From: Kudoa neothunni
Taxonomy: Eukaryota > Animalia > Cnidaria
Direction: 5' to 3'
Assembly: GCA_964304625.1 (NCBI GenBank)
Contig: OZ199839.1
Span: forward strand, 3,950,670 to 4,014,669
DNA: 64,000 bases
The translations under genes were made by a program, and so were the position numbers. Each line of letters opens with the position of its first letter. The stretch's first letter is position 1. A model generated the notes under the pieces. The model saw nothing but the letters and a program-made list of their open reading frames with translations, did no database searches and was not told the origin of the DNA. Below, piece after piece: positions 11,881 through 16,916 of the stretch.

Positions 11881-13935
11881 ATTGCGAGAGCGGGCGTGCT
11901 TGGTTGTTGCCATAGAGCCTCACATATTCTCAATCAAATTTTTCTTGTTGCCGTGTTATCTACTGAATTTCGTTACTGGTGCATATTTTTACTCTCTTTT
12001 TCGTTGTCACTTGTCGTCAGATTCGGCAGAGAAGTTGAATTCTTACTTAAATTTTGCTTCCTTAACATATTAATCTTAATTTTTTCTACATTAATACGAT
12101 TTTTGGTCCGTAAATAATTTTAGTAATGCTTAAAATATATATTTTCTGTACAACTTATATTCAAGATTAAATATTGAACAATTAATCATTTTCATCTGTA
12201 TTATAATTATTGATAAATTATTGTTTAATGTGTTATTATTAATTTTCAAATTGTTATTGTAGTTGACTTAGAATGTGAAAAATATTGTTTATTTCCCTAC
12301 TTTGTGAATACAACAAATATTTTTACTGTTTAATTTCCACATTGTACAGATAATTTTACAATAATTAACTTCAATTGAAATGTGATCAGCGAATTCTCCT
12401 AGCACAGCTTCCCAATTTTTAGTTGCTGCCATTCCTCATGACTTGCTATCTTAAGAATAAATACGCGGGGAATTTTCAAAATTAATTTGACTATTTTTGA
12501 TTTTATTGAATACAATATAAACATTAGTTTGAAGTTATTTGTCCTAATTTCCTTATGGCATATTAGCGATAAATTATTAATTTGACCTTTACTTGTCGAA
12601 TTTTTGTTCATTATGAATATCATATATTACCTAAAAATCAATATGTATAGAAATTAATCAACCATATCATCAAAATTTCAGGAAAAAATGAAAACCAATG
12701 AAAAATCCTATTTTTATATATATTTATTATATTAATATAACAAAAAATTTCACGCTGTTTTTAAAATAGATCGGAAATTTGGTTTTTTCCGATTCGTAAA
12801 AAGCGTCTTAATATAATCAATATGTTTGATCGACCATGCCACGCGCGTGCGCGTGCATTTATCGTCAACTTCTCATTTTCAAAACTATTCCGTATCTAAA
12901 AACATTTATAACTGTTGATTTTGAAAGGAAATATACAACATTGAGTTCTAGCATATATGTTTTTTTTCTATGAAGTATATACTTTATAAAATATTAAAAT
13001 AATGAATTATTACATATTACACAACAGTAATTCATGTACAACTTTTTAAAATTAATTTCCAAACTTTTCAAATATATATGAATAACTTCAGACCATGAAA
13101 AATCCTATTTAAACAAAAAATCTTGGACAGAATATATTACAATTATACCTGAAAATAATTACACTGTTTTTTAAAGTGAGTACTATTTCGAATTTTTGGT
13201 CGCGTATTCTAATGTTTTTATTCTTTAAAATTATTTCTAAATTTCGTCTAGGACACATACAAATTACTAATATTTAAAACCTATTTTGGAGAAAATATTC
13301 ATAATATAGTCCGATGGTGATGCAATTTTTTCTCTTGTTAAATTTTAAATAAGAATTGGACATGAAAGGATTGAATAAATTTTGCCAAAACCTTAAATAT
13401 AAAATTCACTCGATCATATATAGAGTTTGCAGGGTATGTTGAGTACCTCAGAGAGAATTTCATTTCTGAGCCGTGAAACTCTAATCTGGAGTGAGCCCAA
13501 GAGATCATTTTTTTATCTAAGAATCATGTTACGATGAATCAATATAACCTTCGGGACAACCTTCATAAACAAAAGCTCTTTAATGAATAATACATAAGTT
13601 TTCAATAAACAATGTTTTGTCAAAACAACTGTTGACAATATATTCAAAAATAATTTGGTAAAAAGAACAAAATTTATATGTTAAATCTCCTTCGGTGTCA
13701 TTCATGGAGTCCTTGAATTTGGTCGCAATCAAAGTGAATTTCTCAAGTAAGAAAAAGCGCGTATTGCTCAATTAAAAAGAAGTTTCGTCAAAAAAATAAA
13801 CATAATACAATTTTGAGTTAAAAAAGTAGAATACTAGATTCTAGTTTATAAGAGAAGGATTAGGATTTGGGATACGTAACACTTCTTTGCAGAATGTTTC
13901 AACACTAGTGTAGTCACCAATTTTTTCGAATAACT

Positions 13936-14730
13936 TTACGTTTTCTGTTCGTTTCTAAAGCGATTGTTGTTTGCATATTTACACCTTCGAAGGACAATAT
14001 GTGGCCAATCGGAGTCGATCTCACAATCCTCAGTGTTGTTGTAATAATGAGGCTCAACAAAGGTGAGGAATTTGACAGGCAACGAACTGGTCGTATTATT
14101 CAATTTGCTATACTCTTCATAGTTGCCTTTCTTTTGGGACATAATAACGGTTTGTCTAACTGGATTGTACACTTCTGGATAGATATCGACGGATGAGAAA
14201 TGGATCAACACTATTCTCACTCTGAGTAGAGTTGACGCTGCTAGTAGAACAAAGCGGGATCCATAAGTATTAGTATTACGAATGCGACCACAATAGGTTT
14301 CATAATCTGGGAAAAATGGGTCTTCGTCGATGATGGTTTTGTACACTTCAGGGTACTTTTCGATTTCATCGGCAATCGCATTTCTCATATCATCTCCAGC
14401 TCGTAAAACAATGCTGCCAAGCGAGTCCCGTATCGCATCCAAGCAATCGAACAAATGATGAGGAGCCATATCGTTAGGTATTTGTATGAATCCGAGCATA
14501 TCACACAAAGAATTCATGTAGTAGACATTATCTTGAAGAAGTTTGAGAGTGTCTTGTTGAGTTTTTGTGGTGATATCAGTTTTTTCATCGTTAGCCGTCA
14601 GATACCTATTGTCGTAGGTTTCGGTGGCTTTAGCTCGTCTTGAGGCCATAGGGACATTTCTGAATTGTTTACAGTAGGTTCTGATACAGCTTCTAATGGA
14701 ATTGTACATGAGATTGCCGTCGTGGGAGTT
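13936..14730 (-). CDS. OTU-like (probably catalytically inactive) domain ORF overlapping the channel ORF in the +1 frame
   Basis: Pattern GFIQIPND..HHLFDCL / MRNAIADEIEKYPEVYK / YETYCGRIRNTNTYGSRFVLLAASTLLRVRIVLI / LTFVEPHYYN follows OTU-domain layout; the DGxCLF catalytic Cys position reads His. Confidence 0.65.
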   Translation of the reverse strand, partial: NSHDGNLMYNSIRSCIRTYCKQFRNVPMASRRAKATETYDNRYLTANDEKTDITTKTQQDTLKLLQDNVYYMNSLCDMLGFIQIPNDMAPHHLFDCLDAIRDSLGSIVLRAGDDMRNAIADEIEKYPEVYKTIIDEDPFFPDYETYCGRIRNTNTYGSRFVLLAASTLLRVRIVLIHFSSVDIYPEVYNPVRQTVIMSQKKGNYEEYSKLNNTTSSLPVKFLTFVEPHYYNNTEDCEIDSDWPHIVLRRCKYANNNRFRNEQKT

Positions 14731-15874
14731 TCTTTTGAAGTTCTATCCAAAACAATAGATCATTATAGCTCGGCAACCCGCTAAGGTAGCTGTCAGCTTC
14801 CCCAAAAACTCGATCGTCATCATCTTCAGCGTTCACTTCGATAGCCTCCTGTAAATCTTGAGAGGATGTTTTATGTTGACGCACACATTTCTTCGTACGG
14901 GATGATTTGGATGAGCTTTTTGCCGATTTTTTCATCCCAGGACAACAGCCCATTAGACTGTCTTTATATATCCATCCCATTGCTATGGTACTCAGAATGA
15001 TCATAATAATACGCACTAACGCGTCAAAGTGAATGGTGAACAATATGAAGAATCCACTATTCAAATGGCAAATGGTAGGTAGATGGCTGTTGTCGCCGTA
15101 GGGATACGTTCTTTTAATAGGAGGGTCATCTGAGAGGTGACATTTGAATGAGAGATCGTATTTTGCCCAAGAAGCCATTGTACCAAAGGTGAAAAAAAGC
15201 GAAAGCACACAAAACGCCATCACCAAGCAGTGCTTCAAAATATAGGACCTACGCAAGTAAGGTTTGTCGGTGAGTAGATATTGGAGTCGATTCAACAGTC
15301 GATCAATAGTTTTTGAGTTGGCTTCATCATAAACAAATTCTTTAGTGATTTGAAAGGGTTTGTTTGGATCTCGATAATTGATTGGGGTAGTACTGAAAAT
15401 GCCGTTGAGGATATCAGCAAAACCTTCCATTTTTGAGAGAATGGCGGGTATTTTAAGCCATGTCAAATGGATTGTACTGATGATCATCCAGGTGAAAAAC
15501 ATAATATAAGGATAGAAAATCAAAGCCCAAGCATTAGATTCACGGCAGCATCGAGAGTTGATATACCTAAAAGCAGCAACATATTACATCAACCGTTAGT
15601 TGGTATTATGAAGATTCCATTGGGTAGACCAATGGAATCATAGACCTACTACTACTCCTCTTACTTACCTACTCTCGCTGTATCCATAAGATTTTCCATC
15701 TTCTGGATGAGTGCAAATTAACATTCCTGTTTCATAGGTGGCAATTCGGGAAAAAATTAACAAAATAATAATTCCAGCTGCTGTAACCATATAATCTAAT
15801 AGCACATCCCACCATGCTTTAAAATTGCTATAGTTCAGCACAAGCCGATCGGAATCAGCACCGCCCAATGCCAT
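14693..15874 (-). CDS. LRRC8/pannexin-like 4-TM channel domain (2 exons, intron 15567-15668)
   Basis: FKAWWDVLLDY matches LRRC8 LKPWWDVFTDY; also LICTHP, YINSRCC, FYPYIMF, WLKIPAILSKMEGF (cf. WFKFPRTSSKLEHF), two Cys in the second extracellular loop, and LPSYNDLLFWI (cf. IPDVKNDFAFML). No LRRs follow. Confidence 0.85.
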
Positions 15875-16916
15875 TAACGATTAAGATTTTATGTGTTGTG
15901 AATGGAGAGCAGATTATATGATGTTACAACTTTATTGCGCACGCTCACCTATTTGCTTCATATACGTGATTAGCAGCCATTTTACTTATATTGATGCTAT
16001 TGTCGTCAAATCACCCACGCAATACTTAAATCAATCAATTGTGTGTTGGCCCACTACTAGATATGTACTAAAAATTGTTAACACCTGTTTAGCTTATTAG
16101 GAAAGTCGACTAAAATTATTAATTCAATCTTTTTAATTTAACTGAAAATTAAATAAATATTTTGTGATTAGCAAGTAACGCAAGCGTTATTGATAATATC
16201 TATGCTGTGACAATGTAAATATACTACTCTGTTGTTACATTTAAACGTTATTATATAAAAATGGCTAATTTTAATGTATTTCATTTTAAATCCAATCCAT
16301 GATAATATTATAATTAAGTCTTCGTGATGATTCAAACGATTCTTATATGATAACTGCTAATAAAAATAAAGCTACAGTAAATCCATGACAACAAAGTCAG
16401 CATTTATCTATAGTTTGAAAACAATAGGTGAAAACTAAGCATAACATTAAACAAACTGGTATTTCCGAAAGAACTGCGCGCGTTTTCGTAAAAAACAACA
16501 GGTTGTAGGCTGAAAACACCCGCCGCTGTAGTACCTGCTAATTATAATTGATTTTAAAATTTATCTATAATTATGAAGTTATTCTATTTTGCAATCTAAC
16601 GGCAACCTGTGTTAATTTAAGAAAATATCTTGCGTCCCCAATAGCATCATTAATTTTTTGGTAGCGTCGTGCTTTATGTATGAAAACGTCTTTCTTATAA
16701 AACTATTTAATTTTAAGATTATAAAAATAAATTGTTTTATTTCACTCGTCTATTTGGCTGCCTATGTTAGGATTGTGGTTGCCAATATGTGCGGTGACCC
16801 CCCTTATCCACAAAAGTACGGCATCCTCACATGAGATTACGGCACCGTTGAGATTGAATTGAAACGTATTTGTTGCTTTGGATAATCTGTTGTTTTAGTG
16901 TTTGGATAGTTGTTAA

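Follow-up and report, generated by a model that had tools for sequence, protein, structure and literature searches.

LRRC8 proteins (LRRC8A-E), the subunits of the vertebrate volume-regulated anion channel (VRAC/SWELL1), a swelling-activated hexamer that passes anions and osmolytes, are usually presented as a chordate invention in which a pannexin-like pore was joined to leucine-rich repeats (LRRs). LRRC8-like genes in Nematostella, with gene transfer as a possible origin, are mentioned in the relevant passage of a review that cites Abascal and Zardoya (2012) (PMC9399500), and this brief mention was the only account of a non-chordate case in the literature found; 'Lrrc8a' also appears among the candidate Gcm target genes of a Nematostella study (PMC10491807). 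A search of the full-text literature on LRRC8 together with OTU domains, cnidarians or Nematostella returned no description of an LRRC8-OTU architecture. Such an arrangement is described here from the minus strand of a 64,000-nucleotide stretch of DNA (the window) of the myxozoan, and hence parasitic cnidarian, Kudoa neothunni, which is AT-rich eukaryotic DNA from contig C2 of a 40-Mb, four-contig assembly. The locus is best read as one two-exon gene coding for an LRRC8-type pore, a linker and a pseudo-OTU domain, and its product is probably a large-pore channel with a pseudo-OTU regulatory or docking ring, as proposed from profile matches and predicted structures. A preliminary description of the locus, made from the letters of the window, had presented this architecture as one not known from described proteins; the literature searched agrees with this, but other genomes share the architecture, as unannotated members from several cnidarians stand in public databases.

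The gene is represented in the assembly by three minus-strand open reading frame (ORF) pieces, at 15874-15665 (69 residues), 15523-14693 (276 residues) and 14709-13936 (257 residues). Its orthologue P0003, a single 636-residue ORF on genomic contig L013 of a related species, shows 81% and 75% identity with the two large window pieces and was used as a natural full-length stand-in for the window protein. In addition, contigs of four public runs were aligned to positions 13700-16100, among them run X2, which carries the organism label of the window and is 100% identical to it apart from indels, and run X5, which comes from a different study under a different label and is about 98% identical. The features of the locus, with the evidence for each and with TM for transmembrane helix, are as follows.

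15669-15874, minus strand: exon 1, with the start codon, the N-terminal 'FKAWWDV' motif, TM1 (about 15814-15737), the beginning of extracellular loop 1 and the conserved Cys54 (ORF; Pannexin_like profile positions 17-54; donor AG/gtaagt; N-terminus as in P0003).
15567-15668, minus strand: intron of 102 nucleotides, gtaagt ... actaac ... tttag (sequence; absent from L013, and paralogue L002 is uninterrupted at the site).
14737-15566, minus strand: exon 2, first part, the remainder of the predicted LRRC8-type pore domain (Pfam; PDB profile alignment, to LRRC8A residue 360; Foldseek).
Within this first part, minus strand: the loop-1 helix and Cys75; TM2, 15529-15452; TM3, 15256-15164; TM4, 15055-14945; an acidic and basic insert; and the post-TM4 motif GLPSYNDLLFWIEL, from 14779.
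Between 14736 and 14737: assembly omission of 2 nucleotides, GA on the plus strand and TC on the minus strand (X2 and X5 contigs; orthologue contig L013).
14548-14736, minus strand: exon 2, middle, in which the LRRC8-like cytoplasmic helices come to an end (KRNSHDGNLMYNSIRSCIRTY...) and a linker of low conservation follows (alignment with relatives; P0003 model, with helices followed by low confidence at residues 367-379).
13939-14547, minus strand: predicted OTU-fold pseudo-deubiquitinase domain of 203 residues (Pfam; AlphaFold2; Foldseek; VIA; Atlas).
14455-14457, minus strand: His31 of the OTU-like domain, at the nucleophile position and the N-terminus of the first long helix (AlphaFold2 helix start; VIA ranges; family alignment).
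14047-14049, minus strand: His167 in 'EPHYY', at the catalytic-His position (family alignment; Tyr in the orthologue).
13841-13938, minus strand: probable actual 3' end of the coding region (X2 contig, with two homopolymer A's fewer).

The intron is canonical, with the donor AG/gtaagt at 15669/15668, a branch point actaac and the acceptor tttag/G at 15567/15566. The spliced reading ...GYSES-R-YINSRCC... agrees with the paralogues and the orthologue, which are continuous at the splice site, and contig L013 (run SRR31175926) lacks exactly the 102 intron nucleotides. Presence of this intron thus differs between close species, the window gene having it and both L013 and the paralogue L002 being without it.

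The change of frame between the second and third pieces has a different origin. A GA dinucleotide is inserted after plus-strand position 14736 in the X2 contig (depth 6.9) and in the X5 contig (depth 6.14), and the orthologue contig L013 holds two extra nucleotides at the same site. With GA restored the minus-strand codons are tgg ata gaa ctt ctc aaa aga aac tcc cac gac ggc, which translate as W-I-E-L-L-K-R-N-S-H-D-G, identical to P0003 over this segment. The overlap of the channel and OTU ORFs is therefore an assembly artefact, in which 2 nucleotides were omitted from a TC/GA dinucleotide run, and the apparent frame change follows from the same omission. A short intron at 14700-14740 was considered as the source of the frame change and dropped, as the reads show the 2-nucleotide omission. 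The two same-strand ORFs of the preliminary description, the downstream one with OTU-like motifs, are indeed present where they had been placed (23.4 bits for OTU), but their overlap is the product of this error.

A similar correction probably applies to the 3' end. The X2 contig (depth 4.9 here) has one A fewer at 13941 and one fewer at 13921, both in homopolymers, and removal of both A's carries the frame past the stop as assembled (13938-13936) to a stop at 13843-13841; the corrected tail, QKRKVIRKIG...FCKEVL..., resembles the P0003 tail QKRKVIREIG...FCKDVL. The protein comprises 612 residues when minimally corrected, and probably about 643 with the extended tail. The early estimate of one protein of about 610 residues is thus borne out at about 610-640 residues, as the two halves form a single ORF in the reads, which carry GA, and in the orthologue. 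Several small indel errors lie within this one gene, and other frameshifts, 'overlapping ORFs' or pseudogenes in the assembly may be artefacts of the same kind.

Comparison of the window with the X5 variant over 1232 nucleotides from both halves of the gene revealed 20 substitutions, all at third codon positions, of which 19 are synonymous and the remaining one is a D>E exchange. The pattern holds on either side of the junction once the 2 nucleotides are counted. Thus, this is no decaying pseudogene and both halves are read in the frames given above; the gene is intact, has two exons and is under purifying selection.

The front half was assigned through family profiles and a predicted structure. 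The Pfam Pannexin_like profile (PF12534) scored 17.6 and 16.7 bits on the first two ORF pieces taken singly and 41.2 bits, against a cut-off of 25, when read across the intron, a match that covers only profile positions 17-166 of 346; P0003 scored 25.6 bits and other relatives up to 49 bits. Single-sequence PDB searches with the two large ORF pieces returned nothing useful. The family profile (A2), searched against all PDB sequences, gave 26 distinct matches at E <= 7e-4, all of them LRRC8A, C or D (best 3e-10), and no pannexin, innexin or CALHM chain even at E <= 10. The resulting alignment, in which LRRC8A is aligned to residue 360, spans the N-terminus (MI...F..lKPWWDV), TM1, the loop-1 helix with its Cys and TM2 ('FPY'). 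In the AlphaFold2 model of P0003 (38 sequences; predicted local distance difference test, pLDDT, 81) long helices occupy residues 21-46, 82-107, 173-203 and 240-276, cytoplasmic helices follow at 295-364 and both extracellular loops contain β-strands. The best Foldseek matches of this model are all LRRC8 pore domains (E 1.8e-8; template modelling score 0.71-0.73 over about 370-380 columns). Conservation peaks in the N-terminal pore-lining motif, in extracellular loop 1, in TM2 and at the extracellular cysteines; C54, C75, W105 and P109 hardly vary across the family. The post-TM4 motif GLPSYNDLLFWIELLKRNSHDG takes the position of the LRRC8 motif P-x-F-N-D-F-A-F-M-L-H-L-I-D, a correspondence that serves as a lead and not as a test. 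By profile and model the front half is thereby predicted to be an LRRC8-type four-helix pore domain followed by LRRC8-like cytoplasmic helices, in agreement with the LRRC8/pannexin-like transmembrane module first noticed in the window. No LRR Pfam match was found in the three window pieces or in the 16 cnidarian-type relatives scanned, whereas the vertebrate matches of the same search were strongly LRR-positive; the lack of LRRs downstream, also remarked at first sight, therefore stands, and no LRR exon follows.

The position of the LRRs is occupied by a domain of 203 residues with a predicted OTU fold. The Pfam OTU profile (PF02338) matches it at 23.4-23.8 bits for a cut-off of 23.3, a marginal score, and matches 9 of 17 relatives at E <= 1. 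The AlphaFold2 model of the window's own domain (17 sequences) reached a pLDDT of 85.9 and a predicted template modelling score of 0.83, with one insert of 25 residues at low confidence. The top 50 Foldseek matches of this model are all OTU proteins, headed by Otu2 (E 2.8e-6) and followed by OTUD3, OTUD2, DUBA, OTUD1, Cezanne, A20 and viral OTUs. VIA alignment gave Z scores of 14.4 for OTUD1 (139 residues, 3.0 Å), 14.1 for Otu2, 13.8 for OTUD3 and 13.1 for DUBA; over the OTU matches Z ranged from 13 to 14.4 and the root-mean-square deviation from 2.8 to 3.0 Å with 132-148 aligned residues, such that the whole OTU fold is covered. An ESM Atlas feature search placed OTU in 28 of the 30 nearest clusters. 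The sequence motifs retained include the surroundings of the variable loop ('YGSRFVLLAASTLLRVRIVLIH') and the last hairpin ('FLTFVEPHYY'). An OTU domain at the place of the LRRs, as had been suggested, is thus what structure prediction returns for the C-terminal half.

The catalytic centre of this domain is not maintained. The first core helix of the model begins at residue 31, a His (APHHLF, 14457-14455), and the VIA aligned ranges put C320 of OTUD1, C76 of OTUD3 and C178 of Otu2, the catalytic residues of these enzymes, on model residue 31. Across the 17-member alignment the residues at this nucleophile position are H H S H G N H T H S N R - G S G H, with Cys in 0 of 17; those at the catalytic-His position are H Y N L H H S F H G N E Q S S Q H, His occurring in 5 of 17 including the window copy (His167). 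Pro166, directly before His167, is nearly invariant, and the other conserved features are also structural, namely L32, F/Y33, a 'Y/H-x-L-x-A-A' helix, an 'I-V-L-I' strand and P166-x-Y/F-Y/F. A Cys is present in the window copy one helical turn past the canonical site (Cys35), in a column that holds Cys in 6 of the 17 members. Since the nucleophilic Cys is found in no member and the catalytic His is not conserved, the domain is predicted to be a pseudo-OTU throughout the family. The Cys-less catalytic loop 'MAPHHLF', read at the outset as a probable loss of cleavage, is in this way extended from one copy to the family. Elsewhere in the genome, a six-frame PF02338 search of the 40 Mb on four contigs returned only the window gene and no canonical OTU deubiquitinase, which could be explained by the first-look filter together with introns, or by gene loss in a reduced parasite. 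A polyubiquitin locus of at least five head-to-tail units lies at C1:4911469-4912597, and its unit at 4911697-4911897 reads through a TAA, which may reflect decay of the unit or another error of the assembly.

When 1.84 billion representative proteins were searched with a profile, 72 matches were returned, 38 of them below 1e-10, with full-length members of 536-726 residues; true LRR-bearing LRRC8 proteins of vertebrates match only at E 1e-8 to 1e-4. The named members are the following.

Thelohanellus kitauei: KII69696.1, KII71417.1, KII66798.1 and KII73185.1, each a hypothetical protein, two of which UniProt names 'LRRC8 pannexin-like TM region domain-containing protein'.
Hydractinia symbiolongicarpus: XP_057316428.1, annotated 'LRRC8C-like'.
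Dendronephthya gigantea: XP_028409967.1, annotated as an uncharacterised protein.

Hydrozoan, octocoral and myxozoan members can be aligned over the whole length of their C-terminal domains, and contiguous homologues with both modules, for which a search had been proposed, are thus provided by P0003 and by these cnidarian members. The second domain is unannotated in the database members because their OTU matches fall below the Pfam threshold. Judged from the sequences matched, the family is cnidarian-wide, with members in anthozoans, hydrozoans and myxozoans. The genome under study has four paralogues, of which the window gene (contig C2) is unlinked to the other three (C1). In the paralogue L002 (C1:4297407-4298714) a single 436-residue ORF runs through the transmembrane module into the beginning of the OTU module, and two tandem paralogues are located at C1:4284-4289 kb, an arrangement also present in a related species. 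An apparent intron of about 43 nucleotides (gtatag...cttag) lies within the OTU-like domain at L002:915-960 (C1, minus strand) and the tandem copies in L012 have more short introns elsewhere, such that intron positions vary among the paralogues.

In a maximum-likelihood tree, unrooted and computed without a pannexin outgroup, the cnidarian group is split from chordate LRRC8 with support of 99/98. P0003 is the immediate partner of the window gene (100/100); T. kitauei KII69696.1, the nearest named relative of the gene, joins next (100/99), and hydrozoan members attach more loosely (89/87). Among the four paralogues it is the closest to those of free-living hydrozoans. Three short Branchiostoma 'LRRC8A/E-like' proteins (P0065, P0112 and P0116; 453-536 residues) combine a Pannexin_like score of 68 bits with no LRR Pfam match, and may represent another LRR-less branch or truncated gene models. 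In an hhalign comparison the C-terminus of a short amphioxus LRRC8-like protein showed no relation to the cnidarian OTU-like domain.

By homology, the protein would form an LRRC8-like hexameric or heptameric large-pore channel whose N-terminus and first extracellular loop would line the pore. The pseudo-OTU ring would take the place of the LRR ring of LRRC8 beneath the pore and would serve as a regulatory or docking module coupling a cytosolic signal to gating, with a ubiquitin-like (UBL) protein, another partner or simply conformational strain as candidate signals. The equivalent of LRRC8A Arg103 (LRRC8C Leu105 in the PDB alignment), located by gap-free register to the loop-1 Cys, is Tyr in the window and Tyr, Phe or Thr in relatives. 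This pattern resembles LRRC8C/D-type subunits, so that strong anion selectivity would not be expected.

Several observations weigh against this reading. Identity to LRRC8 is just 14-17%, and channel function, oligomeric state and pore properties are all deduced from homology only. The OTU assignment rests mainly on predicted structure, since the Pfam score is barely above threshold and the domain profile searched against the PDB found no OTU chain by sequence, with chance-level oligopeptidase B matches only. The catalytic positions and Arg103 were placed by register and aligned ranges and not by residue-level structural alignment. A complex prediction for the OTU-like domain and the ubiquitin encoded in this genome scored 0.00, a value obtained without controls that carries no weight either way on binding, and among the public runs recorded as containing the stretch none is an RNA run.

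The most serious competitor, unlikely on balance but still deserving attention, is a membrane-anchored scaffold in which the LRRC8-like module has lost conduction and tethers or oligomerises the pseudo-OTU at the plasma membrane or endoplasmic reticulum for ubiquitin, UBL or other partners. Pseudo-deubiquitinases are often binding modules, myxozoans are highly reduced parasites, and both the low identity to LRRC8 and the absence of the Arg103 equivalent would suit an anchor that no longer conducts. However, the strongest conservation falls on the pore-lining N-terminus, loop 1, TM2 and the cysteines, with C54, C75, W105 and P109 among them, which fits a maintained pore better than an anchor, and the transmembrane half is also under purifying selection.

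Two further readings are very improbable. The channel could carry a domain that is still active as a deubiquitinase or UBL protease, working through a non-canonical nucleophile or geometry with His31, or Cys35 four residues on; the window copy does retain His167 in 'PHYY' and has Cys35, and the +4 column has Cys in 6 of 17. Yet no candidate residue is conserved, as the nucleophile column varies between H, S, G, N, T, R and a gap, the +4 column between C, Y, T, A, V and G, and the His column between H, Y, N, L, S, F, G, E and Q; the direct orthologue has Tyr in the last of these, where a selected enzyme would retain its triad. Equally improbable is the assembly taken literally, with a pseudogene broken by a frameshift, or two genes that are separate or overlap, as the stop at 14693-14695 and the different frame of the OTU ORF would have it. 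Against this stand the presence of the omitted GA in contigs from two studies, the single ORF of the orthologue, the third-position substitutions on both sides of the junction (19 of 20 synonymous) and the nearby homopolymer indels, which indicate assembly noise. The single gene for a probable large-pore channel with a pseudo-OTU ring is thus the preferred interpretation.

An old, multi-copy cnidarian family with an LRRC8-type pore argues for a pre-chordate origin, as this pore is found in anthozoans, hydrozoans and myxozoans. A bolder extension, quite doubtful at present, would hold that the LRRC8-type pore predates the cnidarian-bilaterian split, that its sensor is exchangeable, and that the cnidarian pseudo-OTU ring binds ubiquitin or a UBL protein and so gates a large-pore channel; if true, the ubiquitin system would be tied directly to membrane permeability, a connection for which no counterpart has been described. 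The natural domain swap is useful for asking what the LRR ring adds to gating, and the small set of known pseudo-deubiquitinases would gain a membrane-channel fusion. Most gene families have been lost in myxozoans, and the retention of four copies in a reduced parasite suggests that these proteins are important, for instance in the control of volume or osmolytes as the host is invaded or spores form. A practical lesson is that apparent frameshifts in an assembly can be indel errors.

The architecture can finally be set against the systems that it most resembles. With LRRC8A-E the family shares the N-terminal 'KPWWD', four transmembrane helices, an extracellular domain with conserved cysteines, the TM2 'FPY', the post-TM4 'P-x-x-x-D-F-x-F' motif and the cytoplasmic helices. 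In contrast, these helices are followed by an LRR domain in LRRC8 and by a predicted OTU-fold domain here; identity is only 14-17%, Arg103 is replaced by Tyr, Phe or Thr, and the cnidarian family lies apart in the unrooted tree. The entire OTU fold is shared with OTUD1, OTUD3, OTUD5/DUBA and yeast Otu2/OTUD6, whereas the catalytic Cys of these deubiquitinases (MEROPS C85-like) is replaced (by His in the window copy), the catalytic His is unconserved, a 25-residue insert is present and a channel-type pore domain is fused to the fold. A further parallel is offered by catalytically inactive OTU proteins such as OTULINL/FAM105A, a membrane-associated protein whose OTU fold has no nucleophile and which presumably serves in binding and not in catalysis; the parallel drawn is one of fold and placement only, and such proteins are not known to be fused to an oligomeric pore domain. 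The closest counterparts are the Thelohanellus, Hydractinia and Dendronephthya members, which differ in being annotated for the pannexin-like region only or as uncharacterised, and which share the same two-module architecture over their full length.

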